DNA of 64,000 nt from Auanema rhodensis (GCA_964057225.1 OZ059898.1:4030001-4094000), one strand, 5' to 3'; shown: positions 35,821 through 60,605, counted from the stretch's first letter. The notes: a model not told the origin generated them from the sequence alone. Numbers and translations are program-made.

Positions 35821-36349
35821 TTAGGCTCTTGGACGGTTATACTAGAAATAAAAAAAATTTAAAAGACTCTTAAGACACATCTAAACTTACGTCAGTGAAT
35901 TGAACTCGCGAAAACTCATGATTCATCCTACGTTGAACATTTTCAATTTCTTCCATACAAATATTATAATCTTCTGTTTCCATAAGAACTTTCTTCTAAA
36001 AATAATTTATAAATATAGAAGTTTAAATGAAAAATACCTCTTCGTATCCATATTTAATGAGAACTCCTAATTCAGCAACAGTTCTAGATAATTGACATTT
36101 CTCATGTTTCAGTTTAGCTACAGTTTCTGGAGTGGTACCAGCAGCTGCCGAAATTCTATCATTCAACTAAAGAAAAACGATATGTTATATCTATGTATAT
36201 GACAATGAACAACTTACACTCATGATTTTTGAAATTGTGATTTGTTGCTCATATTCAAATCTTTGAATACCAGCTTGAGCACAACGTAAGTAATCAGATT
36301 TCCATTGATTCATCATTGGGCTAGCATGTTGATCAAAGTTGTTGTACAT
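35821..36349 (-). CDS. Uncharacterised 128-aa helical protein, palindrome left copy (family member P1)
   Basis: Mirror image of the 36859-37387 gene; four exons, GT-AG, all phase 0. Confidence 0.85.
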
Positions 36350-36858
36350 GATTAGAGTAATAAGAATAAAACTGTTGTTATAATTGAAATAACTAATGGT
36401 TAATGTTCTTGTATATCTTATATAGTATTATTTTAGTTGTTAATATTTCATATACCCTATAATATAACTCCAGGGTAAGCTTGTCATTCAAATTTCATGA
36501 ACATAGCGGCAAAATCTCAAAAGATCTTCTACTTTTTTTCGTATGCTCATTAACATCTGAACTAATAAATTAAACTATGATCAAGTTATTCAGGCTTTGT
36601 TTGGGACTGATAAATGTTCAAATTTATTTATTATAAAAAAGTTCAGAATTAAGTTTAATGAGCATACGAAAAAAAGTAGAAGATCTTTTGAGATTTTGCC
36701 GCTATGTTCATGAAATTTGAATGACAAGCTTACCCTGGAGTTATATTATAGGGTATATGAAATATTAACAACTAAAATAATACTATATAAGATATACAAG
36801 AACATTAACCATTAGTTATTTCAATTATAACAACAGTTTTATTCTTATTACTCTAATC

Positions 36859-37387
36859 ATGTACAACAACTTTGATCAACATGCTAGCCCAATGATGAAT
36901 CAATGGAAATCTGATTACTTACGTTGTGCTCAAGCTGGTATTCAAAGATTTGAATATGAGCAACAAATCACAATTTCAAAAATCATGAGTGTAAGTTGTT
37001 CATTGTCATATACATAGATATAACATATCGTTTTTCTTTAGTTGAATGATAGAATTTCGGCAGCTGCTGGTACCACTCCAGAAACTGTAGCTAAACTGAA
37101 ACATGAGAAATGTCAATTATCTAGAACTGTTGCTGAATTAGGAGTTCTCATTAAATATGGATACGAAGAGGTATTTTTCATTTAAACTTCTATATTTATA
37201 AATTATTTTTAGAAGAAAGTTCTTATGGAAACAGAAGATTATAATATTTGTATGGAAGAAATTGAAAATGTTCAACGTAGGATGAATCATGAGTTTTCGC
37301 GAGTTCAATTCACTGACGTAAGTTTAGATGTGTCTTAAGAGTCTTTTAAATTTTTTTTATTTCTAGTATAACCGTCCAAGAGCCTAA
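36859..37387 (+). CDS. Uncharacterised 128-aa helical protein, palindrome right copy (family member P2)
   Basis: Exons 36859-36990, 37042-37170, 37213-37317, 37367-37387 with GTAAGT/GTATTT donors. Protein MYNNFDQHASPMMNQWKSDYLRCAQAGIQRFEYEQQITISKIMS|LNDRISAAAGTTPETVAKLKHEKCQLSRTVAELGVLIKYGYEE|KKVLMETEDYNICMEEIENVQRRMNHEFSRVQFTD|YNRPRA. TATATAAG about 70 bp upstream, AATAAA near 37487; two paralogues in the window support the model. Confidence 0.88.
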
Positions 37388-37570
37388 ATACATGTCAAGA
37401 ATATCATAATCAACGTCAATTTCTTCAAATTCATATTGCATGTGTATATATGTATGTATTTTCATTTTGTATAATTCAAATCTTACAATAAAAGAATTGT
37501 AAAGAATATATGTATATGCTTGTTACAAAATATTGAATGGGCGAGTAAGGCAAAGTCGATTGTCAGTAGA

Positions 37571-38321
37571 TTAAGCCAGTTTCACTTTTTCGAGCATACC
37601 AGAGGCCAAAATCATGAATGGTTTCAACGCTCTGTTATAGATCAAGCAAGATCCACGGGTTTGCGGCAAATATCCAAAAACCAAGACGGCTGTACGAAGA
37701 ACAAAGTAAGCAGGGAATTCATGAAGAAGAGAGTCGAACAAGACGAAAACTCCAAACAACATGAAGTAGCTGAGAATACCAGTTTCAGCAGTACTATTGG
37801 TTTTGAACATCTAATAATAATAAAATTTGATCAAATTAAAATAGGTTTTCTTACTTGAACAGTTCTATACATAGGATAAGCAAGAGCCAGTACGTTACTA
37901 ACAAATTGAGCATAGTTACCGGCTAATAAATAAAGAACAAGTACACTCAAAATTCCGTAAACAGCCTTAATTAAGCATTTATAAATAATTTATAAAATTT
38001 CGATCAACTCACATGTTCTCGCTTCACGCCATTAGCTTCAATCTTGGCAATATTGGAATCGATTGCAGCTCCATGTGATTGTGCAATCCATTTCAACATA
38101 TCACTCTAAAAATAACAATTAAAGTAAAGTAAATATATAAATCTATGTTATACATGAGCTTGCTTGAGTCCTGGGACAATATTGCATTCTGAGGATGGTG
38201 TTGAAGGAGCTGAGACAGCAGACGATGTATTAGCAGTATGGAGTTGTTCCTTATTAGAAGAAACAGGAGTCTTAGATGAGCTTTTGGCTGTTGCGGTACT
38301 GACACCCTGAGAGTTAGACAT
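37571..38321 (-). CDS. Divergent REEP/DP1/Yop1 (TB2/DP1/HVA22) ER-shaping protein with an S/T-rich N-terminus
   Basis: Four exons; GVKREH..VYGILSVLVLYLLAG...SNVLALAYPMYRT, LSYFMLFGVFVLFD and LPQTRGSCLIYNRALKPF follow the REEP5/Yop1 pattern. Confidence 0.85.
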
Positions 38322-38635
38322 GTCGACTTTGGCCGGTAATCGAGATGAAGTGATGAAAATGATTTTGGAACTGCTTATATACGGAGAGATTCTGACTCAC
38401 GTTACGTACTCACGTAGCGCACGTAAGTGGATTGATTTTCAAATTCTTATTTAAAAGAGACAAAATTTAAATTGATATTTATACATATCAATTCAAATTA
38501 TTTTTTAAATTTCAAAATCAATATACATATGTATGATTCAAATTATTTATTATTATTTTGTACAGATGGGAAAACATAATTTTTTTAATACTATGTTTAA
38601 ATATAATATATTCACTGTTGTATTTCTTTATTCCG

Positions 38636-39362
38636 TCATTCAAAATCTGGATCATCAAATGGAACAGTTGGAGCGTTGAAATCTAAAGAAGGCTTTTTGC
38701 GACCTCCTTCCATAGCTGACTTGCGACCATTACTGTTTGCGAGAACAGTTTTAATTTCGGATTCCTTAAAAAATATTTTTATTTACAAATAAGTTATGTT
38801 TATTGTACATTTAAAGGTGGAGCTGTTTCAACGGATGCGCCACGTCTAGCTCTTGATGGCTGTGTGCTAGTTATTAAATTATTAGATAAAATAGTATTTG
38901 TAGTTAATGTTGTTGAAGCAGTTGTTGATGTTATGTCCTCTTTGCCCTAAATATAATTTCTTTTAATTAATAAAGATGTTGGTTTTATATGAACCTCATC
39001 TCTCAATTCACGAACTAAAGCCATGTATTCGATTGGTGAAATATATAAATCCTATAATTATTTTAAGGTTTTTATTTTGTTTCATTTTTGAACCTTGTTA
39101 TAATCAACTTTCTTAAAATTGCGTTTTAAAGTAGGAACATTAAGAGCTGGATCAAATCGTTTCAAATCTCCATAACTCAATTGTTCTTTTTTATTAGTTG
39201 TAGCCCATTTCTGAAATATTGAAATATCTTATATTATCTTTTGTACTATTTGAAGTTCAAAAAGAAAACATACACCATTCCAAGTAACTTCTGAGGAAAG
39301 AAAATAAATAGTACCCAGCGACAACCACAAATAAACAATACACCACAACCGCTATTACTCAT
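38636..39362 (-). CDS. Small EF-hand protein with a Thr-rich linker; N-terminus uncertain
   Basis: Five phase-0 exons; EF loop FKKVDYNK|DLYISPIEY spans a splice junction; ends PFDDPDFE then TGA. Confidence 0.7.
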
Positions 39363-39708
39363 TTATTAATTATAAATAAACTATTAAAAAATCAAAATAA
39401 ATTGTTTAGTCTGACGGTCCTCTGAGATTATTCTTTTCCCTTATAAACTTAAGGATATATATTGTTGTAGTAAAACATGAATAGCCGTGCAAACCGACAA
39501 GACCCCTAGGCATCACATATAAAACAAACAAACAAAAAAAAACAAACAAAACAAAACAAAAAAGCCAATATAGTAAAAAAAACAATGTTTAGAACTACGA
39601 ATGAAATCACTTGAAGCCGCTATTAAACTATAAACGGATCATAGAACCACTAACTATATTAATATTGTATTATATGAACCGTAATTAGAGAATTGATTTC
39701 TTAAATAA

Positions 39709-40419
39709 TTAACCACGTACAGAAAAACGTGCACCCATTGTTTTAACAGCTTTGCTTCGAAGTTCTAATAATAGTTCGGTCCATTCAGAGTTGCTTCGTT
39801 GTCCGTTTCCCTATGAAGAAAAATAAATAAAAATCTTAATTTTAAAAATACATGATGGCTTCTGGCAAAAATAAGATCAGCATCTTCAGCTGGAACTCCG
39901 AATTCATTTAAGGCCAAACGGCGAACTTCAGTCTGGTTAATGTTTCCATCGCTGTCGGCGTCGTATTTCTTAATAAGTTTAACATTTTATTTAAGAATGT
40001 TATCGATTTACGGTTTTAAATTCTTGGATTCGCTGTTTCATAGTATCTCGAAGAAGTTGTCGAACGACAGGACATTCACTACCGTCCAAATCACTATTCT
40101 TGTCTTGATCAGCAGTCAAAAAGATTCTCTCCAGCTCTATAAAAATATTAGCGACTGTTCTTGAAGAACAAAAACCTTTTCTATTCAAATCCAGTACTGC
40201 CAAAACAAATGGACTGAATTCTCTAAAAGAAATTGCGCCGTCTTCATTTTTATCGTTATCTACACAACATATTTGAAGCCACCCTTCCTCTTCTAGAGGC
40301 TCTAAAATGAAATTAAATAATAAATACAACTTAATCAGTTTATGGTTTCACTAACTGAGTCCTAGTGGTATCGCTGATCCCAAGCATACAAAAGTGGCCA
40401 AGCAAATTAAAAGTCGCAT
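39709..40419 (-). CDS. Secreted EF-hand calcium-binding protein
   Basis: Signal peptide MRLLICLATFVCLGSAIP; EF loops DKNEDGAISFRE, DQDKNSDLDGSE, DADSDGNINQTE; four exons; TAA at 39711-39709. Confidence 0.85.
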
Positions 40420-41555
40420 GATAGAGCTAAATTGAAAACAATAAGCTTACATTTCAAACTAAACACATCTATGATCAAGAATAAAAGATTTACGTAGACA
40501 TAACATAAGGTCTAAATGAACTAGGCCGAAATATGCAGCTTGGTTAAAAGTGACGACAGTATATGAAATGATTGAATTCATAGAAAAACAAAAATGGGAC
40601 ATGTTTACTGGGTCAACATAGTCAATTGGGACGACTTATCAATCATTTTACTCACTACATTTGCCTATATATTTTAGGAGGAATCGTGAGATATAACAAT
40701 AAGAAAACAACTACAACAATATAAAAACTTCCCTATAGGGTTGAGCAGAAAATACAATATAAAATAAGTTGGTTGTGACTATAAAGAGTTCCTACTTTAA
40801 CTTTTATGATATACTTTCAAATCATACATTAAAATTCAATTTTTTTAATTTACAAACTAATGATTATAATTAAAAATCAAATTATTATTTAAAGAAACGT
40901 TAACTGTTATATATATATGATTAGCAAAACAAGTCAATTCATATACTTTCAACGGCAAATTGATCACCAAGATCTTGCAAGTATTGTCAGAGTATTGAAC
41001 ATTGAGACAGAAAGTGTGAAACGTCAACCGGTTTGTCGATATTAATGATTACGACTAACGTTTCATGATATTAGTGATATGTTAAACTCATTACTTGACC
41101 AGAAAGAAACAATAGCATACATGAAGGAGCCTGCAGCAACAGTATCATCAGGTCTTAATAAAACGTTCGAGAAAAGCAATCATTTGAAATGAGAACAGAC
41201 TCTCAAGGTTGATGGTTCATACAAAGCATTGCTTCAGCCTTTTATATTCTTCTGTACGCTCAAAAACCATAGAAACTTTCTTAAAGCTTGATATTGTTTA
41301 ACATGACGTTCATCAAGTAGGAACAATAAACACGTGTGACGAATGATATACTCTGACAATGGAAATAAAGCACTAGAAAATCTAAAAAAAAAAAGATACT
41401 TTATGATTTACTCAACAAAGCATTAACCAACATTGTTGAATTAATAGGAAAAGAATTACGAAATGTAGAAATCAAAGAAAAAGTTAGTATCAAGAATTAC
41501 AATCGAATGAATAAGTTACAATAATACTAATTTAAGAAATTTTTATACATGCATT

Positions 41556-44101
41556 TTAGACTTGAGCTTCGGTTATGGGAAAGATGGCACTTTCGTTTTG
41601 AGTATCATTCAATTTTGGTGATATCTTTTCTTCTTGGAACTTTAAAAATAGATCTTTTATCATTTTACTGTTCTCCGACGTAATACCAGCAAGAGTAGCT
41701 TTTTGAAACTAAAACAATTAGGTATACCGAGAAAACTTATGCTTGACTTACATCATCCGTCATTGTGTTCCATGATATAGCTTTTTCAATAATTTGTAGC
41801 ATTGCTCCGATGCATGATGTTTCGCTGTCCCATTCCTTAGAAGATCGGCAGAACATTGGATAGAGTAACTAAAAATATTAAGTTGTATTGTAAGCTGTTG
41901 ACTTAAATAAAAATAACATACCACTGTACGTATTGTTGGATCAGCAAATGCTTCTTTCAAACCACAGCCTATTCCATTTCTTACCATTCGATCCAGGCCT
42001 GCGTCTTCTGAATAACACTGCTCCATCCGATTGACAACGATAAGACCTGGAAGATATTTCTTTAGCATTTAAAAAAGAAAATTTTTGATTACTCGATTTC
42101 CCTAATCTTCGATATATAGCAGCAAAGTCTGGATTGATTCTTGTACGAGAAGCTAATGTTGCTTTTATATCAGTTTCGTTTTTAAGTAAATATTTTGCAG
42201 CCTCAGAAACTGAAAACAGAAACGTTAAAACAATTATACTGTTTCGATGCACCTGGTCTTCCCATTATGCAATCGACAACTATAGCATCATATGTGTCAT
42301 TTTCTAGCAAATCCATTACAGTAAGATCTGACACAACCATTTTCTCCATGAAAAGCCGTGCATATTCTAAAGAGTGAAACTTTGCAATACAATATCAAAT
42401 TACCGCTTACTCTCTTCACGTATCTTCCCAATCCTGCTTGTATTAAATGATATATCAGCTATACTACTTGTATTAGAAACTTAAAAGAAGTTTGTATATG
42501 AATACTTGAAAAAGTTTTAGTACCAGTGTCAATATTACTATGACGACGGTCCCTTGGTATGGAAGGTCTCTCTTTTCCCGTGTCTGTTTTAGCTCGTTTC
42601 AGATTTTGACTATTAGAACTATCACATATATTACTTCCTGATACCCGTCCTTAAAAAACAATTTATAAACGGAAACGGATATATGTAAACTAACTGTCTA
42701 ACACAAACCCAAGAACTGATGACACCCGTTTTTGAATACTAGATGAACTAGGAGTAGTTCGTCTGAGAGTAACAACTACGGGGCGAAGTGGAGTCCCTTC
42801 CCCTCCGGGAGTATCTGAATACTATGCTTAAATATTAGAGATAGCTTTAATAATACCTGATACAGATTCAACATTCGCTGTAGGCGTTGTTAAAGAGGAC
42901 CTTCTTCGGGTACCACCAAAAACTCTTGATTTTGAATTGCTAAGCCATCTTCGTGTACTACTTCTCTGAATAGAAGAATAAATTAAATGAATACTAAAAA
43001 AATAGATAATTACCTTTGTAGAAGGAGGAGGCATCATAGACTTATCCAGCATAGGAGTAGAAGGAGTGTTGCAACCAGTTTTATTGTTAGAACTCAGAGG
43101 AGACTAAATCAGAAATGTAAATGGTGAATAGAAATAAAATATATACATCTTCAACGTCCTTCTCCTCCGGCAAATCAGCCATACTTCCCGACATCTTATG
43201 CATTAAACGCATGGACCGCCTCCTGAGAAAACCACCTGGCGATGTTAACGAATCGGATAAAGACGAGGCTGCTCGGCGAATAGCACTTAAAGTTAAAACT
43301 ATAACTCAAAATGAGGAAATATCGAACCTGTTGCACAAGCCGTTTACTAAATCTGATTCACCCGGCATACTTCTCGAGCTTGATCGGATATGCCCTCTAT
43401 TGAATTCACCTCTTGCGGGAGTAGCCAATAGACTAACCGCATCAAAAGCTGATCTAGAGTCCAGTGAAGAAACAGATGTATTGGTTAACTATTATAACAC
43501 AAGAATTATATCACAAGCAGTAAAAAACTAGCATACCGAAAATATTTCGCTGGGCTCTCGTTCTGAGTTCTCAACAAACCTAAGCAGTTCGGTATTTCTG
43601 TGAAATGGGAGAGGTAGAGGTTCAAGCGAATCTTGACTCTGAAAAAAAAGCCATCAAATTGAAGTGTAAAAATACTCACAGATTCACTTAGACAGGATAC
43701 ATCAGAATTGTGACTATCAGGAGCAAAAAAGTGAGATAGCTTTGAAGTTGATTGAGCTTTACTACGATCCTACGGCAAAATTAAAGTAAAAAAGCATAAC
43801 ATAATCTTCCACATACTTTTAGAGCTGAAGAGCTCCTTAACTTCTTCAAAAAACCTCCGATTAAACTTTTTCGCCTTTCCTTCTCTGGGGGTGGTGCAAG
43901 AGCATTCTGTTGTTAATATTGATATTTATGCAATTAAAGTAAGCAGGAATACCTCTTGATTATCATACCAGGGTCTTTCTTTTTTATTTAGTGGAGGTGC
44001 TTCGCACCCGATGTCAAGCTTAAAATCATGTTGCAACAAAAAAATATGTGCTGAATTACCTGATTAGTTGACTTCCGTTTCTTCTGAATTGAATTCATCA
44101 T
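41556..44101 (-). CDS. Uncharacterised protein: long S/T/P/R-rich disordered N-terminus plus an alpha/beta C-terminal domain (possibly macrodomain-like)
   Basis: About 17 exons join in frame through GT-AG introns, from MMNSIQKKRKSTNQ to PITEAQV then TAA; C-terminal part contains TYDAIVVDC, SLIVVNR and LKEAFADPTIRTVLLYPM. Confidence 0.78.
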
Positions 44102-44375
44102 TTAGTTCATGAAATATTAGAATCGAACTAGCACGAGTTCAGGAGAAATCTAAAAAAAAGAATAATCAAACTCTAGATAAAATGCTATATGTCATTACTA
44201 TTAAGACCAAAAAGTCTAAATATTAGAGAAATATTTAAATTCTTATATAGAATACAATATATATTTATATATATAAAAAACTAATAAAGTTAATATAACT
44301 CAATAAATTAAGTTTAAAAAATTGATCGATGAAAATACAACCTTACTATAAAAAACTACTGACAACTAACGCGCA

Positions 44376-44403
44376 TTCAAATTTTTTGTTTTCGCGCGGA
44401 AAA
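44376..44403 (-). promoter_or_regulatory. E2F/DP-like site (TTTTCCGCGCGAAAA) followed by CHR-like TTTGAA; DREAM-type promoter element
   Basis: Minus strand reads TTTTCCGCGCGAAAACAAAAAATTTGAA, about 280 bp upstream of ATG 44101. Confidence 0.5.
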
Positions 44404-44652
44404 GGAGGTGTTGCTGTTGGGTCATCAAGTGGGCCATTGTCACTAAACGGACAAAGTACTCCCCCACTTTATAACCTAAGACTATATTATGCGATATTGT
44501 TACATAATACTTACGGGTGTAATACTATGTAACTTCAGGCTATATTCATTAGTGATGTATAAAAAAACCCTTTATTAATAGATTAATACAAATAAGTACG
44601 AAGAGATCATGAATCTGCCTTTAGTTCAAGTTTGCTCGAATTTTGAAATGTT

Positions 44653-45700
44653 TCATAGAAATTTTAATATGAACAACGATTTTTTGTTCCTGTAAAAAAA
44701 TAAAAGACTAACATAACACACAGGAAGTTGTTTCCCCTACCTTTTGATCCAATTGAAAATGAATTTAGCTAGAAATGGCCAAAAAATAAAACAAATAATG
44801 ATAGGCAAGTACCGAAAAATGCGTGAAAAAGAAAAAAATGGCGTTTTGCGTGTCTGAAATAAGTAATTTTATATTTTGAATATGTATACTATATTTTTGT
44901 GTTATATTCGTGTACGCTTATTTTTTTCAGTACAGACCTGAAGTAACTTTCCCAGCATATGAGTGATTATCCTAAGCTGAAGGGTATTGGTAGATTCAAT
45001 GTCGTACAGTTGTCGGCTTAGTAATTGAAGTTGTTGATTGATCTGCACTAATACAGGGTAATGAGCCACTTCTTGAAACTAAACAAAGAATAACTTAAAA
45101 GCATTTCCATACATAGTTGGTTTCCCAGTAGAGATGATTTGAATAGTCAGAATAATATATCGTTTTTCAATCATGCGATTATTCGAAAACTGATCATGAG
45201 GTCACAAAAATCTTACTGTGTAATTTACAGGCCTCCAATCATCTTCGGATTGGCTGCTACCACTTCGATTTCCAACACGACGGTGCCGTTCTCTTTCTCG
45301 CAATGTCGGTACACGACTTCTTATACCTAATATAGCAAATTCTATTAAGATAATATTGACTTCTTAGAACTACGTTGTATATTTAACGTAAAAATAATAA
45401 TCCTAACCTTCTATTCTAATCTTCTCAATACTAGAATTTTCACTGCTACTGGATCTTTTGTGTTTCGAAGAAGATGCCCGAACAATTGGGGCTAATATAA
45501 CTCCCTCAGTTTTTGGTCTTAATGTAAGTTAATAATAGCAAAATAAAGAAGATTCGCACATACTTTTGACGTTTTAGATGACGTGCAGCATCTTCACATA
45601 GTTTTTTTAGTTCAGAATCACTAACATCAAGGGCATCTTCATACGATGAAATCATACCTATATCTAAGTCACCAGATACACTACGGGATATGGCTTGCAT
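44653..45700 (-). CDS. Tail-anchored coiled-coil protein of about 215 aa with an ACBD4/5-like C-terminus and no ACB domain found
   Basis: Exons 45700-45564, 45517-45408, 45326-45217, 45078-44938, 44853-44741, 44689-44653 join in frame; FFAT-like SSYEDALD, coil VLVQINQQLQLLSRQLYDIESTNTLQ, TM IIICFIFWPFLAKFIF and basic tail KRNKK. Confidence 0.72.
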
Positions 45701-46995
45701 TCTACAAAACAAATCTTATAAAAATAAGTATATAGGCAATTGGAATGGTAATATAAAGAATACTTTAGTATTACTATTTGAAAAAAGAGGTATGCGAAAG
45801 ATATGGATGAAAATCAGCCGATTAAGTGAACGATAAGAGGAAACAGCTTCTACGTTCTGCAGAGACTGTTCAATCAATATATTGATAACTATAATTAAAC
45901 GTATAGCAAATAAAAAGAAGCCACAGAAAAAATCTTATCATAATTATTCAAAAATAATGTCTATTCGTTTATAGCAATATATCAAAGAATTTTTAAAAAT
46001 TGAACCACATTGTTTAAGCCACAAAAGCAGGTATAGATTTTTGATTTTGAATGTATATTATATATTATATATAATATAATCTGGAAAAATCAAAAAAAAT
46101 ATAGATAACTGTTTTATAATTATTCCATAAGTTTGAAATATTTAATGAATCAAAAATGATTAATAATGTTGAGTTATAATATATATCTATTATCTATATA
46201 TCTTTTCTGAATTATTATTATTATAAAAATAAATACAATTTTCTATATAAGCTTATACGTGTTATATACATATTTAGATAGTACTACTTTTAATATTTTA
46301 AATTTAATATTTAATTTTAATTAGGTATATGCATATATAATATAATATAGAGTATTATGCTTAATTGAATTCTTCAATAGTTACTACGATACTTAAAATA
46401 GAATTTATATTGACAAATTCTTAGTTTTAAGAAGAACTTTTATGAAAACCTACTTTGTTATGGTTAAAAATCTGATATTCAAAAATAACAAGAAGAGAAA
46501 ATAGAAATAGGATAAATCTAGATGGATATATATAGATTAACGAAGACATTGAATTGACATCTGCCCTCTGAATGACCTTAGCGTTCCTGGTCATTCAAAT
46601 AATATGTATTGATTTTTATATTATGATGTTTAGAATGAAACAATAAAACTTGGAAGTAAAGTAAAAATGAAGTACTCTGTACAATACTGAAAATAATATT
46701 ATATGAAAATAAAATCAACAAAAAAAAGTTGAAAGTTTCAAATCCAAATCTTAAATATAATTCAATATAGCATTTGAAAAACAGTTCTATATTGTATATT
46801 CTGTATTCCTTATTTAATCATATGAAATAATCAATATGACAAAAGAACCTGTTTAGATGCCGTAATATCAGCTGAAATTGCGGACGAAGACGCAAACATC
46901 AGGTCCTTTGCAGTATCAGAGTGTAGTAATAGTTTGGTATGATTTTATATGAAAATGACAGTTTAAATGAAGAGTCAAAGATAGTATAAATAACC

Positions 46996-47031
<36 letters not shown>

Positions 47032-48188
47032 ATTATAAAAAATCCCAGCTTAAAATAATTGAAGAGAATCCCTATGTTTAGTCTTCAATATATTAAAAAG
47101 ATTTAAAAACTTTGATGTAATGAGCAAAGACCTAGCTAACATATCCAAAATTATTTTTAACACATTCCCAGAGAAAGCTTTCAAGTAAAATAGACTCTCA
47201 CCACATCAAGCTCAAAAGAATATTTCTCTTATATAGTTATATTTAAAAGAAAAGTGGAAATTTAAGATCAGTATACATTTTTATTTTGGAATAGAATTTC
47301 AACGAAATTTTTAAAGAAAATAGATTAGTTTTCAATTTTTGATTACTTTCTTTGTTTTTTTTCTATCTTAACACCTCTTTAACAAACGATTTAAAAGTTG
47401 AATAGACAATTATTCTAATTGATTTGCATATTAGATGAGGGAATGCATTTTCAAGATTGTTAGACCTTCTTGAAGTCCGTGTCTTGCCTATTGAGTTGTT
47501 GTCTTCTTAGCTTCTTCTTCAATTTTTTTCAATTTTTTTTGAGGAGAATAAAACATTTATCAAAAGCATTTCATTATTGTAAAATGAATATAGTTTATAA
47601 GCATTCTATATAATCTAGACTAAAGCTATTTATTATATCCAGAATAGTAAAACATATATATCTAATCATTACTTTCATTAATTCAAAATAATATTATATT
47701 AATGCATTAAGATAGATACATATACATATTAATAGAAATGTTATACTTTTTCTCTTTGAATAGAGTACCCATTTCCTTATATATTAGCAACATTATAATT
47801 ATCTTTGAATTATTTTCCATTTTTAATTCATCAAAAATCTGATTGTTTCATATTTAAATTAAATTATTTTTGACACAATTATACATTTTTTTATTATTAT
47901 CGTTACTAAATTACATGAACATATATCTATTTTCAGTTATTGAGTCAGTACCAACACCTTGTTTTTCTCTGTAACCTCTCCAACCCTCTCCCACATATCT
48001 CAAGAGTGAAAGAGTTGAAAAAAAAAGAAAGAAAAATGACAAAATATTTCTTTTTCTGTTTTTCCTATGAACATTTTTGTATACGTCTTTCATATTAAAA
48101 TATTTTTCTTTTATTCTTGAAAATATTAGATGTTCATATATATTTTTATGCTTTTTTATAAGTTTTTAGTTATAAATAAATAAAGAAA

Positions 48189-48232
<44 letters not shown>

Positions 48233-48806
48233 TGTATATATATGTATATATAAATAATTTTTATATTGTATCTATTAGTTTAATTATTACATTTTGCAAT
48301 TCATCACTCTTTATTCATACTACATGAACACATTACATCTCTCATTGACTTTTTCTTTAGCTTTTCTCATTATCTATTCTTTAACTCCATGTATTTTTTC
48401 TTCTAAATCTTTGTCATCAAAGTATAATATTAATAAATTTGTAGCATAATTATACTATAATAATATGAATAATAAGGGTACATATGGATATATTCATTAT
48501 GAACAGTATAGAACATTTATAACTGATCAAGTTTCTAAGTTTCATTGTTTCTTTTGTCTTCGATAAAAAATACAACCACTCTCTCATTTTAAACCAATTT
48601 AAAATAAGTGGATTCCGACTCAACAGAGTAATTCGATTTTATAGACTTGTAAGGAATTCCTGCGAATAGAATCTTCTTCTATCTTTACAATTTCTTGGAA
48701 TAATCTTTTTTTTGTTAAATTATAGTTTTTTTCATCATATTATGTTTGTTTTTGTTGTTTTTTCTTTTTTTATATTAAATTTTATGTTTTTATAGTTAAT
48801 ATAAAT

Positions 48807-51800
48807 ATGCTGTTAGGAGGAGAATGTTTCCCTAGTCGTTATGACGTAAGTTTTTTAAAATTTATCTGAGATTTCTCGTAAGTTTCAAATTTTCAAAACA
48901 TATTACCAACATACACGTTTAAAAAAAGTTATTCATAATAGTAGCCGCAACTCTAAAAAACGTTTTTTTCTCAAATTGTCTAAGAGTTCAGTTTTAGCAC
49001 ACCTGTTAAACTAAATTTAAGACAACTTAGTCAAAAGATATCCAGTTTCTAGCGTTTCCGCATGATTTTTAGATAAAGATACTAGGTACCTTATCTATAT
49101 TCGCATATTTCTAAAGATAACTGGTGATGAATCATATTCGAAAATTAACTAATGCTTATAAGCGTCCATTTTCGCGAAATGTTATTGGTCACGTTCCATC
49201 AGTTTCAAGAGTAAGTACTAACAATTCTTTTTCTTTAGTGTATTGTTATAAGCAATGCTATCTTTTAGACTTTTCATTATATATTATAAAAATATTATTT
49301 TATAAAACACTTTATTCTTCTTAAACTTTCAAGAAAATATCTAAAAGTTCAATTAAAGGAAATTAAAAAAGAATTAAGAATGTGAATAAACATTTTAATT
49401 CACATGATTAATAGTAAAAATAAGTTAGTCTGATTTTATTTATCAGCTGTTAGAGCGTCAAATGTTTCTTAGCATATAATCAGCGATTTATCAATTTCAC
49501 ATCGTCTTTAGCTCTCATTCCTGAAGTTTTTTTCGTTTAGTGTTTTGTTTTTATATAAATATTTTTCATAAAAGCTTTAAATATAACTATCGTTTTACTT
49601 CATGACTTGATTGTGTTACCACTTGTTTGGAAATGGAAATGGAAACGATAATTCAAGTCGTCTAAGATTTCTTCTTCTCAATCAAAGTGGTTCCACCAAT
49701 ATTCTAATATATTCTCTAATTTTTTTTATATCATTCTTTCAAAACAATATAAACAAATTGATATTGTATTTATATTATATACATATAATATTATTTTACT
49801 TTACTAGTTAGTGAAGAAATAAACTTCTTACTAATAACACAGCCATATCAAACAGCCTTTTGTTTAAGATCGTTCATCCAAGCATAAAAGCAAGAAAAAT
49901 CCAAAATCTATCTGGATTCTGGATGCTTAACGAACAACATTATCTTTATTCTCATAGTCTTCTCCAAATCTCTTTGTCTTTTCCAAGTCTTTTCATTATG
50001 TTCCTGAAGAGTAATAATTGGACGGAAAAATAAGAGAAAAATCAGAATTAAACGAAGAAAATGGAATAAAAATGTTGAAAAAAACACACATAAAGAGAAT
50101 CTTTACGTTATGAAGGACATATTAAAAACAGTTATCTTCTATTCTTATAGTTTTTGTTTCATTTTTTCTTTTATTGTATCATTTTTATTTTTGGAAAAAT
50201 GTCGGCCTCACGACGACAATCTATGGGATTTGTACTTCGTCAATTTGCGAACAGTATTATTCCCCTTGCAGGAGTACACAAGCCACGAATGGTTGTAAGT
50301 TTATTTTAATTCACACAGGGTTACTCATATCATATCTATCAATCTATCTATATACTTTGTTTAAATTATTTCATATTCTTATGTTTATATAGAATATTGA
50401 AATATATATTCATGTGTATTCCTATTTTGATTTGAAAATAAGCATTTTATCAGAAGATTTTAAGGAAGGAAATAGTGTAATTCTTACAATCATACTTGTT
50501 TACTAAAGGTCCGGAAGAGTTATGAAAGCTATGAGTAACTAGTAAACTTCAAATCCTTTCTTTCTAATTTTTTTTGTTCTAACTGAATATAGACTATGGT
50601 CTGGCATGTGTTTACGTTGTTGTTAATTTTTTTGATGTTTGGCTTGTACCCAAAAAACATGTAATTTATTTAGAATGTGGAAAAAGCAACAACATGAAAT
50701 ATTATCCGAAAAATAGAGTTTCAAACAATTTCTACTTTTTTTTTCGGTTTTCATTCTCTATCGGCTTTTACATTATTATAGAATAAATAATTTCATAATA
50801 ATTTAGATTTATAATAATTATTTTATATATAATATATATATATATATATATGTATGTATATTATATTAATGAAAAAGTTAGTCGTTATATGTAACAAGGT
50901 GAATGAGTGAAAGAGAAATAGATGTAAAAATGATGTAAAAGTGAATATATCAAATTACGAATGCAAGGTTTGATTCATTAATTAACAAAGTCGCCAAAAT
51001 TTTTGTCTCACAGAAGTTTTGTTTCCTAATATCAAACATAATATATCTTTATAATCATTTATATTTCTAAATCAATAACAATACAAGATTTTATATTTGA
51101 AAAAAAAAAAGATTTTAAAAGATCCATTTCCATTTGATCCATTTAAACTTTTATATAAAATTTGTTCATTTTTCTTTCTTATTAATAGATAATACTCATG
51201 CATAAAAATAATTTTATGAATTACATGTCTTATTTTTTAATTAAGACATCATGTTCTTAACTCCAACTAACTAAGGCAATAACATTCATTCCTAGAATGT
51301 ATTGGAACATTTATTGAACAACATTTAATTCTCCTGAACCTCGATTTTCCACCATTTATGGGGCAAAAGAGAAACAACTTTTACGGCATCTGTCACAGGG
51401 CTTCTCACTAGTTGATATAAACTGAATATTTTTTAAATGTTACGAACATTTGCCATTTTTAAGCTGTACTTTTCATATATTGTTTGTTTTTCAAAATATG
51501 GCAATTTGTAGATTCATCTAAAATTTCTTGCTACTTCTACAACACTGGCAAATTTCTGAATTTTCTTTCTAAAATATCACATAGTAAAATGCCAAAGTTG
51601 TCTCTTCGGTTTTGAATTTCATTTAGCATCACGAAGTTTGTCCCCATGCACCTCTTTTCTTTTCCACTTGAGCTACTGAAATGGCTAACTGTCAGCCAAC
51701 TTCCAAACTTTCTCATTATACAAAGGATTTGATGGTAATCAATTCTTCTAATCAATTTTTGTATACTATATACATATGCTGAGAATATGATAAAAATATA

Positions 51801-53293
51801 ATTATATACTAGTTTATCTTCCTTTAACTATTCATTTTGTACTTCAGATGCCGACTACTCAACTCAATATAGTATTGTCAGAACAACGAGCAGTAGCCGG
51901 TGAATACTTGCAAGCCAAAGTAAACTCATAATCGTTTTAAATATTTTAATAAATATATTTCAGGTTTTGTTGGATTCTGCTGACCCGGACACAGTAATTC
52001 ATTCCTTAATCGCAGAAATAAAAGGAGTAGGACGTACTGGATGGGTTAATATCCATACAGATAAAATATTTGAAACAGAAAAAGTATTGACACATATATT
52101 GTTTCTTTTTTATTATTTCTTTTATTTCTTTTTAGGTATACTTGAACATAAATTTATCGTTATGTCATGATGGTGTACCAATACCTGTGGGCAAACATCA
52201 ATTTCCATTACAAGTAAATTGATATCTTGTTAGTACAAAAGCTCATAAATAATTTACAGATTCAACTTCCTGATCATTTACCCAGTAGTTATGAAAGTCA
52301 ATTTGGAACTGTTCGCTATCAAGTGAAAGTAACTCTAACAGCAAACTCTGAGCAGGTATAATAAGTCAAGTGAAGTTGGACTTATTGATTTTTTTCTTAG
52401 GCATGCTGCTCCGAAGTATTTCCCTTGGTTGTTTTGGCCAGATCTTTCTTTGATGACATTCCCTTCAACGTTTTATCCCCAATTGATTTCAAAGATGAAG
52501 TAGGAAAGAATTAAAATCAAAATTCTATAGAATATTCAGGTTGATTTCACATGCTGTTCATTGCCATTTGGATGCGTATCAATTGTTATATCACTTCCTA
52601 GAACTGCATTTTTATTAGGAGAAGTATGTTAATATGTTTATATAAATGTAAATTAATGTATATAGAATATGGAAGCACAAGTAGCTATTAATAATCGAAC
52701 AAGGAAATGTTTAAAAGAATGTTCGTTAACATTGACTATGAAAACACAGTTTGAGGCTATGAGCAGGTGTGACTTACTCGATTCTCTTCTCTCTAACAAT
52801 GAAGAATTTTAGATATGAACATGTGAACGAAAAAAAATTGAGTGAACAACTTCTAGAAATGGTACCTCTTGGCTCAGTTAGAGCTCGGAATAAGATTGTA
52901 AATTATAAATTGAATTGTACAAAAACAAATATAATTTTCCAGGTTTTTGAAAAATGCTTGGTCAAGATTCCAGATGCTGCTCCTCCGACTCAAAACTATA
53001 ATCTTGGAACAGGAGAAACAGCAATTATAGCTATTCATTATGTTTTGAAATTGACAGCTCTACCCGGTACATATACACAATATTTTAAAATTTTAATGAA
53101 AATACAAGAATTTAAAAAATTTGAATTTATTATTTTATTACTAGGTATTGAATGTGAAGTTCCAATTATTGTTACAACTCGAGGATATAAAGATAAAGCG
53201 AAGCAAGCAGCTTTTTTGATCCATAACAATAATAAACAGCGGCTTCAAGCCCAACATCGAGCTCAAAATATGGTAGACAATAATAGTTTATGA
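48807..53293 (+). CDS. arrd-15: Alpha-arrestin (arrestin domain-containing protein) with alternative first exons; common body starts at 51848
   Basis: MPTTQLNIVLSE..AGE, GRTGWVNIHTDKIFETEK, GKHQFP, LPSSYESQFGTVRY and AIHYVLKLTALPGIECEVP match C. elegans ARRD-15 as I recall it; phase-0 first exons at 48807-48845 (MLLGGECFPSRYD) and 50199-50294. Confidence 0.9.
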
Positions 53294-55240
53294 TGAAAAC
53301 TATATGTTTAAAATATAATAATCAGAAATAATATTTTTGGGATTTTGTGTCATATACAGCATGCTTTAATTTGATCTATATTATTATTATTATTATCATA
53401 TAATATAATTTAATTTTGATCTTATTTATATATTATTCATGAATATATTAATTTTATTTAAATAATCGATTAATAAAGTGTGGATAATAAACTCATTTTA
53501 TTTATATTTTTATCTTAATTCTCAATATTATAATAGATATTATATTTTCTTCTTTGTTCTAAATAAACTCTTATCTATTTAAATATGTTATAATATGTGT
53601 AAAAATTGAACAAAATAATAATAAAATTTAAATTATGATAAAAAAAATATTTTCATCATACGTTATCTTTTTTGAATATTATATTAAGTTGTATAAGTTA
53701 ATAAGTTGATTTCCATAATTACTCATGTATAGATGCGACTAATTTTGGAAAACATAAGTTCATACTCAATATGCATATTGTATTATGAAAAGCATATGCG
53801 TATGTGAGTATGTATGTTAAACTAAACTATTTAGTATTATTTAGTATATATAAACTTTATTCTTTACTTATATACGTATATGAGAAACGAGCAATAATGT
53901 ACATACACATGTTACGTAACCATAGAAATTCTATATATTCTTCATATCTTGAATTCAATATTATAACGTCATACTTCGGATTTTAGTTCTGTATTATTCA
54001 TTGTGATGTCTAATACATCACAATGTGTATATATATATATTCTCATATTATATATTATATAGTTATAGTTATAAAGTCTTTGCAATCCATAACAATTAAT
54101 AATCATAATATCTATATTATATATTGATTATGTTCTATAGTAATAACTATAAAATAAAAAGTTAGCATTTAAATATAAAATGCTTTATATCGTAAAATCA
54201 TGTGTTCACATAAGATATTTGTTTGCAGAATTTTTCAAATACCTCATATTTCGGTCTTAAATTCTGATCTTTACAGTGAAAATTTCCTGAACGACTCAAA
54301 CAAATACGATAACATTTGAAAACCTGATCGAATCTGATCATACATCTTCACACATGTATGTCTATGTCTTTTCGTGAACCTTTCCAGGAAATAAGATTAG
54401 ATGAATAGATACTGCTCTCATTTACCATCTGAAAATCTTCTTCCTTGTTTCATTCATTATTATATGTTTATCGACTTAGATAAGCATGTAAAATGAAAGT
54501 CAGCTATTTCAAATTGTTTGAATGACATCATTATTCTACCAACACATCAATAATTTTTTCAACTATATTGTGCAATAGAAAGTTCTAAAATCGTTCAATT
54601 TAGTTCTTTTTTCATTTTAAAAAATGTATAGTTTGGTCTTTTTAATGTTCATTTGCTTATAATCATTTTCAATTTATTAATTCTTCGTTATTTTTTTGAG
54701 TTTTTTTAGTTTTTCAAAGAAGATAGTTTTCTCTGTAAAGGTCAGTATTAAAGATTAAAAAATGTATATGTTTCATATAGTATATATGTATATAGTTATA
54801 ATCTTAACTAGCAATGAGAACCACGCTCTATCGTACAAACTTCTTTTCAATAGATCCCTCGTATTTCTACTACTTCACAGTCTCCCCTTATTTCGTTATG
54901 TTTCTCTTTCTCGTTGTCTGACTCTCCGCTCAATTTTTAATACTCTATGCATCTCAATCTCTTTTTATTTTATGTCTCACCATACAAGAGCTAATCTCGG
55001 AGACTCATTGATCCAAAATCTACTTTAATCAGTCTTTAATATTGCATGAATCTGCACTTTTAGTTCTCAAATTGATCTCTCGGTTTATCAATTTTTAAAT
55101 AATTTAGATAACGTTTTTCTTATCAGCATTTTTTGCTGCATTCGTTTCACATTGTCGTATTTGTTACAAAACCAAAGCTATATACTTATTAACACGTTTT
55201 TTCACAAAAAATAATAGATTATGTTAATGTGTAAACTACA

Positions 55241-55313
55241 GCCCGGTTAGCTCAGTCGGTAGAGCACCAGACTCTTAATCTGGCTGTCGCGGGTTCGAGC
55301 CCCGCATCGGGCT
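55241..55313 (+). tRNA. tRNA-Lys (anticodon CTT)
   Basis: Cloverleaf with acceptor stem GCCCGGT/ATCGGGC, anticodon arm CCAGA-CTCTTAA-TCTGG, GTTCGAG T-loop, and a T-run terminator from 55320. Confidence 0.97.
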
Positions 55314-55975
55314 TCAAAATTTTTTTTTCTAATTTCTACAATTCATCGGTCACGTTTGTTATAAGCTAAGGTTTCATCTTGATTATCATTTTAAAATAAT
55401 AGGTACCAGGCTTCCAGAACCCTTATTTTCTACCTCGTGTATCTGTCAATAGAATAGCTTGATTTGGAAATATTGTAGGAATATCTCTTAATTTTCATTA
55501 AGATTAATCTTCTTCATGTAAAAGACGAGAATACTTCTTAATCGCTCAAAAACTGGTTTATCCTTACCGATTCATTCTTTCCTTTTGTTCACCATATTTA
55601 TTTATTTTGTAACTGATTAATAATTATAAAATCAATCACTATTTATTTTTAAATATGAATATTTAATGTTTTTATTTTCCGATTCAACTTACTATTTTTC
55701 ACCAAAAATATTTTTTTTTTTCATAGAAACTTCAATTTTTTTTTCCAATTTAAAGGCTTATTGAAGGGTGCTCATTTAAATAATATTTCTTTCGTATATT
55801 ATAGATTTAAATGAAATTTAATATTTTGTTTTTCTTGGATTATTCATTTTTTGATCGATTAGATGTCTGATTTTATGTTTTTCTCCGTTTCCTTTTTTTA
55901 TAAAAATTAATTCAGAATAAACATATTAAATCGAACTTCTTAAATTTATTAGTTGAGAATACATAGCTCTTGGCT

Positions 55976-57873
55976 ATGGTGAAAAAATCTGTCGAATATG
56001 GAGAGGAAAATAATCGTAAATTATGGACAAAGTTAGTTTCATGTTGAAATTAAATAAATAAATATTTGAAAATAAGGTCAGAGACTAAGATTTGGACAAT
56101 AACATTGTTCAGTGGAACATGTATGTTATATGCTGCTCGTGTTGCTTTGCCTATATCTGTTGCACAAGTGGGAAAAGAGTTTGGTTGGTCAAAAACGGAT
56201 TCTGTGAGTAAAACGCATTTTCAATTTAGTTTAATTACAATATTGAAATCATTTTAGGGAACATTTTTATCTTGCTTTTTCTGGGGTTACGCTTTAACTC
56301 AAATATTTGCTGGTGGCTTTGCTGATAGTTTAGGTGGTGAGAAGGTTGTGATGTTATGGTTATTTTTAAATTATTTTCTTGTATTCTCCAGATATTACCA
56401 TATAATACATTATGCTGGACATTGTTAACATTCTTCACTCCTCAATTGTTTGACTTTGCATATTGGACCGGTTTACCACTTTTAGTTATTCTTTTCACAA
56501 GAATTGCTACTGGCATTGGTCAAGGTATGAATGTTAATATATTCAATCAATATCTATGGTTCTGATTATTTTGGGAATTTTCAAATTTGAACAGCTTTTA
56601 CCGATTTCAAATTGTTTGTTCAGGTTTTCATTTGCCTTCTGTTGCTTCGCTTGTTTCTCGACATTTAACAGCTTCAGATAAAGGAAAAGTTTTCGGGGTA
56701 GTTTTAGCAGGATCACATTGCGGGTATCAAAAATTATTATTATTATAAACATATATTAACAATTGTTTAGAACAGTATTAGCTGGTTCGTTTGGATCATA
56801 TTTACTCGATGAATTTGGTTGGAGAGCTTTATTTCAATTTTTCGGTAAAAATAAGATTAGAATAGATATTGTTATTATCAGTAACAACGGTTTAAGGTAT
56901 AATTTCCTTGGCATGGTATTATTGGCTTTGTTATTTTTTGAAAAAGATTGATCGTACTCCTCTTCCCTTATCGAATGATAGTGAATATTTAATCAAAAAG
57001 GTCATTTAAGTCTGTTTTTGTTAAACTCATCTTGAAATGTATTTAGGGTCCTAGCATATATTCTAGTATCAGCACAACTACTGTGCCATGGAAAACATTA
57101 TTTCGGCATCCTGGGTTTTGGTATGTTTGTAATGAATGTTTCAATTTTGATTTAAGTGAATAATAGTATTAACTAATTATTAATTTTAGGGCAGCTGCAA
57201 TAGCTCAATATACAGGAGGTAATGCATATTTTACTATGTTTAATTGGCTACCAAGTTATTTCCACGAACTATTTCCTAATGCATCGGTATGAGCATCCAT
57301 TATTACTATGCTCAATTATACTTTTTAAGGGTATTATTTATAATGTTGTTCCTTCGTTAGCAATAGTTCTTACTTCGATGGTAGCACCTTATATGGCTAT
57401 TAAACTACTTGCAAATGGGCATTCAACAACAAGTACACGTAAACTAATGGAGGTACGATCTTTAAAACAAATTCTTTAATTACCATATTAACTAAAAAAA
57501 TTTATAACGTTAGTATGAGCACTTTAAGGGATTGTCTTTAATTGGAGTAGCTGTGTGTTTGTTCATTGTACCAGGAGCTCATTCATTTGTTGCGGCTTTA
57601 CTAATGTTCACATTAGCCATGGCTTCACGTGGACTTCATCATGGAGGTGTATCTGTTAATCCTCATGATTTTGCACCACATCATACTGGTTCTGTATTTG
57701 GCATATTTAATGCCTGCGGAGCTATTACCGGATTTATCGGAGTATATGTAGCAGGATATATTCTGGAAGCTTCCGATAACAACTGGTCTTATGTTTTCAT
57801 CATGACGGGTGTTCAATGTGTTGCAGGTGCAATCATTTACGGATTATATGGAACTGGGAATAAGATTATCTAA
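55976..57873 (+). CDS. SLC17A9: SLC17A9/VNUT-like MFS anion/nucleotide transporter
   Basis: WTITLFSGTCMLYAARVALP, GTFLSCFFWGYALTQI, WLPSYFHE and HHGGVSVNPHDFAPHHTGSVFGIFN motifs; about 11 exons; TAA at 57871-57873. Confidence 0.92.
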
Positions 57874-58271
57874 TTTTGCCTAACTAAACTTTCACGATTC
57901 ACAGTGTTATGAACTAACGTGTCATACCGTCCTTCTATAATATTATTTCATGGGTCATTCGTCATCCAGGATCACTTGTCATACAGAAACAAAACTCAAA
58001 TTTATCAACTAGCACTGTATAACCTAATATATAAATATTATTTCAAACGTCATAATACCAGCTAAGTATTACCAACTAATAGCAAGAAATTTGTATCGTT
58101 GGCTACGGGGTACATAAATATTTATTAATACAGTATGCAGTATATTAACTTTAACACTAAATATTTCTGTTCTATGCATTGTTATAATTTTTTTTAAATA
58201 ATCACATTATTTATTAATAAATGTTAATAATAACAAGATAATTTGTGGTTTATTATACTGGACATTGTAAT

Positions 58272-58802
58272 TCATCCTCTACGTCTTGTGAACTGAAAAG
58301 AAATATTAATAATAATGCAATTTTCTGTGGCATTTTACATCTGAGGATCTGATTTTTAAAACTTCTTGTGCCATTTCATCTATAAGCAAATCCATGCAAA
58401 ATGACCAATGTTCATATTCAGCTATTTCTTCCAACACAACTTTCTAAATGTCAATGTTATTAAGTAGATAATTTCAGATAGATAACTCGAGAAACTTACA
58501 ATTTTAAAAATGTAACGAAGTTGAACCTCTAATTCTGATAATCTTTGTGCACAATTAGCTTTCTCCAGTTTTGCTACAGTTGTAATCTCTCGTTCCGAAA
58601 CGGAAAAATCACGAATTAATATATTTAACTATAAATAGAATCATGTTTGTGTGTTTTTTAAATCACTTACATTTACTATTTCCCATATAACTTGATCTAT
58701 TTGTCTGTTAATGTGTTCTAGTCCAGTATATGCCAAATGTATATAAAATATTTTCCAAGATTCGATTAACTGTTGAAATGAAACATCAACATGCGCAGAC
58801 AT
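58272..58802 (-). CDS. Uncharacterised 128-aa helical protein (family member Q), paralogue of the palindrome genes
   Basis: Exons 58802-58671, 58628-58500, 58443-58339, 58292-58272 (44/43/35/6 codons, phase 0). Protein MSAHVDVSFQQLIESWKIFYIHLAYTGLEHINRQIDQVIWEIVN|LNILIRDFSVSEREITTVAKLEKANCAQRLSELEVQLRYIFKI|KVVLEEIAEYEHWSFCMDLLIDEMAQEVLKIRSSD|FTRRRG. Confidence 0.88.
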
Positions 58803-59109
58803 ATAGTTTCTGAAGAAAATTGAAGTAGAAAATAATATTGAGAATAGAAAAAACATAATATTGTAAAAACAATAAAGTAATACATTGAGTTTCGTATAGA
58901 ATATTAATGCTGCACTAACCTTAGAAGGAATTAGATAAAATCAACTGAACATCCATATATACCCTAGGCTATATTGATATCGGCAGGTATTGATGCTGTT
59001 GTAACCGGTGGATATAATTAATATAATTAGATCTAAATATATATAATATATTAAGTGATGTTCATAAATATTCAGCTACTTGGAAAATTTTATTTAAGAG
59101 TTAATTGAA

Positions 59110-60605
59110 CTAATCCAAATTATTTGCTGTAAGATATTCCAATAAAGTATTTTGCTCAATAGCTTCTTCAATTCTATTATAAACAGTATATATGTATTGT
59201 TGGTTAAAAATATCTGTATATTATGTAATAAATACCTACAAAAGAAATGAAGATTGTAAGAATTTTAGAAGCGATTGTTGTTTCATGATTCGATGAATTT
59301 GGGTAGCATTCAAATGTTGAAATTCATAATTTGTTGCCTTCTCTGCTACTAAGGGGCTAAATAAAAAAATTGTTCGAAATAAATTTAAAATTTTCCTTGC
59401 CAATTACTACATGATTTGTCTTCCTTATCAATGTTTGTTCCTACACATCTCTCAGCAATTTGTCGAGGTAAAGGCATATTTTTTGAAGTTGATCTAAATA
59501 GGATGATAATCACTTAATATTTCATTCTCATACTTTAAATGTACTCCGGGTAATGAACAGTCCGTTTTAACCATTTTATTTGGAAGAATATCTCCATCAA
59601 AGTTATCTTCTTCATGAAGCATAATCTGAAATGAAATAAGATACATCTAATTTAAATACAAAGCAGTATATTGAAACTTCAAAGTAGCTACCTCTACTAT
59701 AGCTAACTATTCCTATAACTGGCTTCGTTCATGCTCAAATAAGTATTGAGTTAAAATGTGTGCAAATTTGGCATTGCGAAAAAAGTTTAAAGACATAAAT
59801 TGGTAATAAGTTCATTCAAATACATACTTTATTTCATACCACATACAATTAAATGAACGCAAAAAGATGAGATACAGATCAAATAACAAATTAACAAAAT
59901 AGAACAAGTGAAAACAGCGATAATATATACAAGCAAATACTCTAATAGCATCGTAACATGTTACACACACCTCTTCTCATAGCAATTATAAAAGACAGAT
60001 ATCTGTCTTCATTTATGAAGAGTTTTGAAAAAAGTTATCCCCTTCGGCGAGAAAACTAAAATACTTTCCATATAATTGTCTTTTCTCCAGTATTTTGTTT
60101 ACCTCTGTTCCTTGCACAGAATTCATAGCCACACCGAGCATCTCAGCAAGTTGATCCATCTTATTTGAGCAACTCGTGTAATCAGGAGTCCTTAACAGGA
60201 CTTTTTTCTAATATATAAAATGATTATACTTGTTTAGTTATTTCTTACATACCACTGCCAATGTATACTCTAACTTCAATTCTAAATCAGCTAATCGTTT
60301 AGCACAATTATATTTTATGTTTATAGCTTCCAATGCTTTTTTTTTATCTGTGGAATAGAATTCAGCTATGAAGTTATTCAACTAAAAATATGAAATACAC
60401 AATTAGAGTGAGTCAAAAGATTTTAAACTAACTATTTTCAAATAAAATTTGAAATTTCACTTACATTAATTATATCCTTAACAACTTCCTGGATATTTCT
60501 TTTAAAATCCGTGATCCCGTGTTCAATAGAAAGAAGAAAACGTTCTTTCCATTGATGCTGGTCACTTTCGCTTTTCAATGAGGTATCTTCTCGTGTATTA
60601 TCCAT
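59110..60605 (-). CDS. Uncharacterised protein of about 246 aa (family member R): family domain plus C-terminal extension
   Basis: Exons 60605-60465, 60381-60253, 60207-60103 (47/43/35 codons, phase 0), then 59625-59534, 59493-59401, 59356-59240, 59173-59110. The last two exons need a GC-AG intron at 59400-59357. Confidence 0.75.

Follow-up and report, generated by a model that had tools for sequence, protein, structure and literature searches.

A lineage-restricted family of small proteins with a predicted helical-bundle fold, represented by four genes in a 64-kb stretch of Auanema rhodensis DNA

Analysis of a 64,000-nucleotide (nt) stretch of Auanema rhodensis DNA (GCA_964057225.1, OZ059898.1:4030001-4094000; hereafter, the window) identified four genes, denoted P1, P2, Q and R, that, judging from their sequences, form a genuine gene family. 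On balance, we consider it probable that these genes are paralogues within a lineage-restricted nematode family of soluble, intracellular proteins of about 15 kDa that are putative adaptor or assembly subunits. The family is new and unnamed but of a common structural kind, that is, an ordinary lineage-restricted, fast-evolving nematode gene family. The surrounding window has the appearance of an AT-rich animal genome, with a GC content of about 28% and introns of about 45-85 nt, and also carries exons of a cadherin, a C2-domain protein and a transporter of the major facilitator superfamily (MFS).

The exons of P2, Q and R were placed by exact translation, and P1 is the exact reverse complement of P2. 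In all four genes, exons 1-3 consist of 44 (47 in R), 43 and 35 codons, respectively, are in phase 0 and have GT..AG borders, exactly as proposed in an earlier reading of this DNA (hereafter, the sequence-only reading). An Arg-rich last exon of six codons, which that reading had described for P and Q, was found in R as well and is common to all four genes (YNRPRA in P, FTRRRG in Q and FSRRRG in R); the encoded proteins are 128 amino acids (aa) long in P1, P2 and Q and 131 aa long in R. The pairwise identity among P, Q and R is 22-24% (30 of 128 ungapped positions for P:Q, 28 for P:R and 31 for Q:R), which reproduces the previously given values of about 23% and 30/128. The homology is significant: the Smith-Waterman scores among P, Q and R are 106-133, compared to 29 +/- 5 for shuffled sequences (z 16-19), with none of the 1000 shuffles scoring as high. 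The three motifs reported as shared, WK-x9-G, LN..I...K...L...Y and K.VL-x5-Y, were recovered in the family members, and 16 alignment columns, the tail R-x-R among them, are invariant over P, Q, R and an orthologue from another Auanema. When a hidden Markov model (HMM) of the family was run against the six frames of the whole window, the only matches were the twelve exons of P1, P2, Q and R, and no further family member was found (next best E value 0.57). The Kyte-Doolittle scan detected neither a transmembrane segment nor a signal peptide (maximum over 19 residues, at most 0.87), again in agreement with the sequence-only reading.

In the database searches, the spliced P, Q and R were represented by separate exon pieces, with the Auanema orthologue serving as the proxy for the full length. 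Comparison of a profile built from the three copies of exon 2 with 1.84 billion representative proteins retrieved one true relative (E 6e-11), CAI4230397.1 (P0001), a 116-residue 'unnamed protein product' from Auanema sp. JU1783 with FTRRRG at its C-terminus. The large proteins P0002 and P0003 (2049 and 3121 aa, respectively) were rejected as relatives, being spurious coiled-coil matches with 10-12 short, repeated hits each. Pfam yielded no match for the nine exons and none for CAI4230397.1 even at E <= 10; the word-based searches added nothing beyond the JU1783 protein, and the one started from exon 1 of Q (99-aa stop-free reference) produced no candidate. With no confident match to a characterized family in Pfam or in the database profile search, and with a sole relative that is itself unnamed, the initial description of the family as unassigned stands. 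As far as these comparisons reach, the family fits the description of a lineage-restricted ('orphan') one, with Auanema sp. JU1783 as the only other source so far.

The JU1783 gene has introns at the same positions and in the same phases as Q, its product is 61% identical to Q, and the surrounding regions are collinear in the two genomes (arrestin, tRNA-Lys, MFS, Q and the small gene S described below). The annotated protein is probably short at the N-terminus, with the start placed 14 codons too late: an in-frame ATG lies 14 codons upstream (L001 9959-10000) and gives a protein of about 130 aa that begins with MS as Q does. For the Q pair, the nonsynonymous distance (dN) is 0.28 and the synonymous distance (dS) is 1.77, which is saturated, so that the dN/dS ratio of roughly 0.16 is an approximation; in the same comparison, dN is 0.078 for the neighbouring MFS exons and 0.062 for the arrestin exons. 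Because dN is far below dS and yet about four times that of the neighbours, Q appears to be constrained but faster-changing in amino acids, and these distances indicate that the orthologue pair evolves under purifying selection. No copy of R or P was found within 10 kb on either side of the Q orthologue in JU1783; a 170-aa gene at the syntenic place of R is unrelated to R.

Both Q and R give rise to spliced transcripts. The RNA evidence comes from four runs of one study that were compared with 2,501 letters of the window (58200-60700), covering the Q and R region; these runs contain about one third of the words of that interval, and the assembled contigs are spliced and therefore derived from RNA. 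All the coding junctions of Q (58292/58339, 58443/58500 and 58628/58671) are exact in spliced contigs, and those of R (60381/60465, 60207/60253 and 60055/60103) were found in all four runs, so that every coding junction of the two genes was seen in RNA. The extent of R differs from the one previously proposed, namely, a fusion gene spanning 59110-60605. The contigs splice into an exon that is entered at 60055 and translates as FSRRRG followed by a stop, and they end near an AATAAA signal; given the 60055/60103 joint, the stop and these contig ends, R is a stand-alone gene for 131 residues, with the shorter span listed in Table 1. A fusion of R with 59110-59625 was not seen in the contigs, which is compatible with a rare read-through isoform. 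In-frame stops are present upstream of the R ATG, and the non-coding 5' exon is spliced to 60663 over an intron of 731 nt with the donor GTGAGT and the acceptor TTTTTTAG. No contig from the four runs covers 58956-59795.

Table 1. Positions of the family genes and associated features, counted from the first letter of the window
Feature	Position	Strand	Details
Left inverted-repeat arm	35705-36553		849 nt, whole P1 unit; 100% complementary to right arm
P1 coding span (predicted)	35821-36349	-	128 aa; exons 36218-36349, 36038-36166, 35891-35995, 35821-35841; exact mirror of P2; family HMM matches the mirrored exons
Spacer between arms	36554-36654		101 nt, only 34/101 self-complementary
Right inverted-repeat arm	36655-37503		P2 unit; runs to past AATAAA at 37487-37492
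P2 coding span (predicted)	36859-37387	+	128 aa; exons 36859-36990, 37042-37170, 37213-37317, 37367-37387 (YNRPRA, stop); GT..AG, phase 0
Q coding span	58272-58802	-	128 aa; exons 58671-58802, 58500-58628, 58339-58443, 58272-58292 (FTRRRG, stop); exact translation
Q 5' untranslated region (UTR) intron	58810-58919	-	joint 58809/58920 in run X4; GT..AG; upstream UTR exon to at least 58955
Gene S	59110-59625	-	small gene between R and Q; neither part of R nor a family member
R 3' UTR	59828-60034	-	AATAAA at 59833-59828; contigs end at 59837-59878
R coding span	60035-60605	-	131 aa; exons 60465-60605 (47 codons), 60253-60381, 60103-60207, 60035-60055 (FSRRRG, stop)
Non-coding 5' exon of R	61395-61498	-	loose end of an X3 contig maps to 61395-61424

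P1 and P2 reside in the arms of an inverted repeat, and the palindromic duplication noted in the sequence-only reading was confirmed, the arms being identical over their entire length. Because an arm extends from 204 nt 5' of the ATG to beyond the AATAAA, each arm is a complete gene unit. The combination of identical arms with a spacer of low self-complementarity would fit an inverted duplication that occurred very recently around a unique centre or, alternatively, arms that are kept alike by gene conversion.

The fold was predicted with AlphaFold2 for CAI4230397.1, with the well-aligned exons from the window, which exclude exon 3 in the case of P and R, as added alignment rows. The resulting model (predicted local distance difference test score, pLDDT, 89.9; predicted template modelling score, pTM, 0.78) is a confidently predicted antiparallel three-helix bundle, in which the first two helices (residues 3-40 and 45-81) measure about 37 residues each and the third (85-108) about 24; the ESM Atlas model of the same orthologue agrees (pTM 0.73). 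The hydrophobicity of all three helices has a period of 3.5-3.6 residues, that is, the helices are amphipathic. The C-terminal tail of eight residues is predicted to be disordered (pLDDT <50); its last six residues, [FY]-x-R-x-R-[GA], come from their own exon and include two invariant arginines. The proposal of a helical bundle with about one helix per exon thus holds with respect to the three predicted helices and their periodicity, but the helices end 6-8 residues past the exon borders. The suggested combination of AlphaFold and Foldseek provided a confident helical bundle for the Q orthologue but no informative fold match. Foldseek against the PDB returned generic hairpins only (best E 0.08), and the best VIA-align Z score, 11.2, is under the noise level of about 13 for helical models; all the fold-search matches (ESCRT-III, PspA, BAR-like proteins and seryl-tRNA synthetase arms) are generic. 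Yeast Nmd4, a match of CAI4230397.1 in a phmmer search of the PDB (E 0.011), was rejected because Nmd4 is an alpha/beta PIN protein and because the match vanishes with the family profile. A spectrin repeat, which the conserved W of helix 1 brought to mind, has no support from Pfam or from the fold searches.

Under the adaptor or assembly-subunit interpretation, the family would have grown by local duplication, with Q and R as a tandem pair that has gene S between them, and P1 and P2 as an inverted pair that is either recent or gene-converted. The proteins might function as small, non-enzymatic adaptor or assembly subunits, with the conserved side of the helical bundle as the partner-binding surface and the basic tail, [FY]-x-R-x-R-[GA], as a short docking, localization or turnover signal. 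A C-terminal end of the form -RG or R-x-x-G resembles the C-terminal degrons that are read by cullin-2 ligases in mammals. Several considerations weigh against this interpretation. The putative function is suggested by the predicted fold and by conservation, and a helical bundle as such carries no functional signature; the fold itself was modelled for the Auanema orthologue of Q alone, from a very shallow alignment. The restriction to this lineage was assessed with a 43-residue profile and a word-based search, which remoter relatives could escape. Finally, the estimate of selection comes from a single orthologue pair with saturated dS, making dN/dS only rough.

BLOS1 (BLOC1S1/GCN5L1, PF06320) is a helical subunit of about 125 residues that is shared by BLOC-1 and BORC, complexes in which KXD1, BORCS6 and BORCS8 are among the partners (PMC12846789). 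The nematode BLOS1 genes contain introns at codons 20/21 (phase 1), 44/45 (phase 2) and 89/90 (phase 0), which are kept in Diploscapter, Acanthocheilonema and Enterobius, and their loci in these three genera keep ASD2 upstream and Mago-bind downstream. The P, Q and R proteins could be very diverged, lineage-specific BLOS1 paralogues, that is, alternative subunits of rod-shaped helical assemblies involved in endolysosomal trafficking, a possibility that we regard as unlikely. The family profile had two matches among all PDB sequences at E <= 10, keratin 14 and the BLOS1 chain 9tqb_G (129 aa). The latter (E 0.26) is a gapless alignment of 70 residues (31-100 against 30-99) in which LN pairs with HLN, and VLEEIAEYEHWS with ALKEIGDVENWS, and the matched stretch of 9tqb_G is 83% identical to Heterorhabditis BLOS1; however, keratin 14, generic coiled-coil noise, scores better (E 0.012). 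In addition, 28 canonical BLOS1 proteins, all with PF06320, were collected; the hhalign comparison and a BLOS1 HMM were based on 19 BLOS1 sequences. The four full-length family members aligned to the 19 BLOS1 proteins over 72 columns with a score of 23.3 (P 0.003), and the hhalign runs overall gave scores of 19-23 and P values of 0.003-0.017, but the associated probability is only 2.7-10.7%. Column-shuffled BLOS1 scored 12.0 +/- 2.8 (maximum 21 of 60), reversed BLOS1 12.9, and BLOS1 against 40 windows of coiled-coil decoys, drawn from P0002 and P0003, at most 16; the family itself, however, reaches 23.0 against the decoys, level with its BLOS1 score. Similarly, the BLOS1 HMM places exon 2 of R and exon 3 of Q in the same register (ranks 5 and 17 of the 1984 six-frame fragments of the window), but assigns only 2.0-7.3 bits to P, Q, R and the orthologue, and the reversed R nearly equals R. 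The Pfam GCN5L1 model has no match to CAI4230397.1 even at E <= 10, let alone at its gathering score. The protein lengths are similar, as are those of the middle exons (129 versus 133 nt), and the helices are interrupted at matching positions (VVD here, IGD in BLOS1), but under the alignment, the introns of the family (44/45, 87/88 and 122/123, all in phase 0) are 3.7 and 5 codons apart from those of BLOS1, and the phases differ. Among the motifs that are invariant in canonical BLOS1 (DHLN, AY.NQ.LD.E.K, QT.QW and LKEIGDV.NW), AY.NQKRLD.E.K and QT.QW are absent from the family, LN alone is kept in all members, L.EI..-E.W is present only in Q and its orthologue, and the aligned W is confined to the Q lineage. 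Neither ASD2 nor Mago-bind is found next to the family genes, the neighbours of Q being gene S and the MFS gene. The subunits of BORC and BLOC-1 are themselves reported to be ancient paralogues of one another (PMC12846789), which counts in favour of kinship; against it, canonical BLOS1 is predicted to form one long helix rather than a compact bundle, and is described as an extended helix in the intertwined tetramer of BORC (PMC12846789). A Foldseek search with the BLOS1 model returned nothing. Since neither the Pfam model nor the introns, the synteny or the predicted fold agree with it, a relationship to BLOS1 is unproven; we consider it doubtful, and it would in any case be kinship rather than membership.

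The sequence-only reading had favoured genes in conflict, pointing to fast divergence and duplication. A family of this type could be engaged in a germline-, sex- or pathogen-related arms race or belong to a selfish element, such as a drive or a toxin-antidote pair. We find this scenario highly improbable, and no less so the specific variant in which germline- or sex-biased P1/P2, Q and R act in segregation distortion or in a toxin-antidote-like conflict in a three-sexed lineage with non-Mendelian X inheritance, and with the Arg-rich exon as a turnover or targeting signal. It is true that the family is restricted to one lineage and outpaces its neighbours in amino-acid change (dN of 0.28 versus 0.06-0.08), but dN/dS in the one orthologue pair, although only roughly 0.16 given the saturated dS, is indicative of purifying selection and provides no arms-race signal. 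At a fixed length, the paralogues share no more than 22-24% identity, yet all members retain that length, the introns and 16 invariant residues. One pair of copies lies within a perfect gene-bearing palindrome, R lacks an orthologue at the syntenic place in JU1783, and non-Mendelian X transmission is reported for the likely host genus; however, neither a partner gene nor a transposon was seen, nor was any presence/absence polymorphism, and duplication combined with fast change is normal for nematode orphan families. Tandem and inverted duplications are frequent in ordinary nematode families, so that duplication is no sign of conflict either, and nothing measured here points to genetic conflict. 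Even more remote is the prospect that the frames are transcribed but are young, decaying or chance open reading frames, and that the P1/P2 palindrome is possibly an assembly artefact. The family includes no named domain and has one database relative only, but the four copies are intact, their exons are in phase 0 with canonical splice sites, and 16 residues are invariant, all of which is hard to reconcile with non-functional frames, as are the frame and introns kept in another species, the dN far below dS and the confidently predicted fold. The complete identity of the palindrome arms would fit an artefact, whereas the unique, non-palindromic 101-nt spacer and the gene-rich contig argue against one.

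Gene S has no match to the family HMM, and none of its four pieces matches Pfam; no RNA contig for this gene was obtained from the four runs. Its exons have a counterpart of 61-71% identity in an unannotated part of the JU1783 genome, at the syntenic place (L001 9357-9623), and no R is present upstream of this counterpart. A TTTCAG acceptor precedes the first ATG of gene S by 3 nt. R, S and Q share the same strand (58241-61498, -) and are separated by gaps of about 200 and 150 nt, a spacing that resembles that of nematode operons. On the other side of Q, the MFS transcript contig (+) ends at 58243 and the Q contigs (-) end at 58241-58248; the convergent 3' ends therefore abut or overlap by a few bases, and there is essentially no intergenic DNA between the two genes. 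Further along, a tRNA-Lys(CTT) gene at 55240-55315 (+) has a counterpart in JU1783 (L001 13398-13493) that is conserved in sequence and in its place between arrestin and MFS.

The present analysis adds a cleanly defined orphan family with a confidently predicted fold, of which Q and R are transcribed, to a nematode lineage that is studied because it has three sexes, inherits the X in an unusual way and eliminates DNA in a programmed manner. Two gene models change as a result: R is a stand-alone gene instead of a fusion, and the sole database relative probably starts at an earlier codon. The main use of these results is in annotation and in providing candidates for expression or knock-out screens. 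Should the weak link to BLOS1 prove true, a core BORC/BLOC-1 subunit would have expanded in this one lineage, which is a rare occurrence.

Compared to known systems, the family resembles ESCRT-III/Snf7 and PspA/Vipp1 in that helices 1-2 superpose on the alpha1-alpha2 hairpin of these proteins (root-mean-square deviation 0.8-1.2 A over 76-81 residues, Z 9.7-10.5), and the Atlas structure matches also point to hairpins of the ESCRT-III/Snf7 type. Since these Z scores do not rise above the noise of helical models, only geometry is held in common with the ESCRT-III and PspA hairpins. ESCRT-III/Snf7 (PF03357) and PspA/Vipp1 proteins are 200-240 aa long and contain further helices, in contrast to the three helices within the 128-131 aa of P, Q and R, which have no Pfam or sequence match to them; the alpha1-alpha5/6 core of about 200 aa that characterizes ESCRT-III members is lacking. 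BLOS1 differs from the family in its conservation, with 60-83% identity across nematodes as opposed to 22-24% among the P, Q and R paralogues, and in having no Arg-rich tail exon; it resembles the family in its size of about 120-130 aa, its all-helical structure and the weak, collinear, gapless alignment of 65-72 residues that includes LN and L.EI..-E.W.

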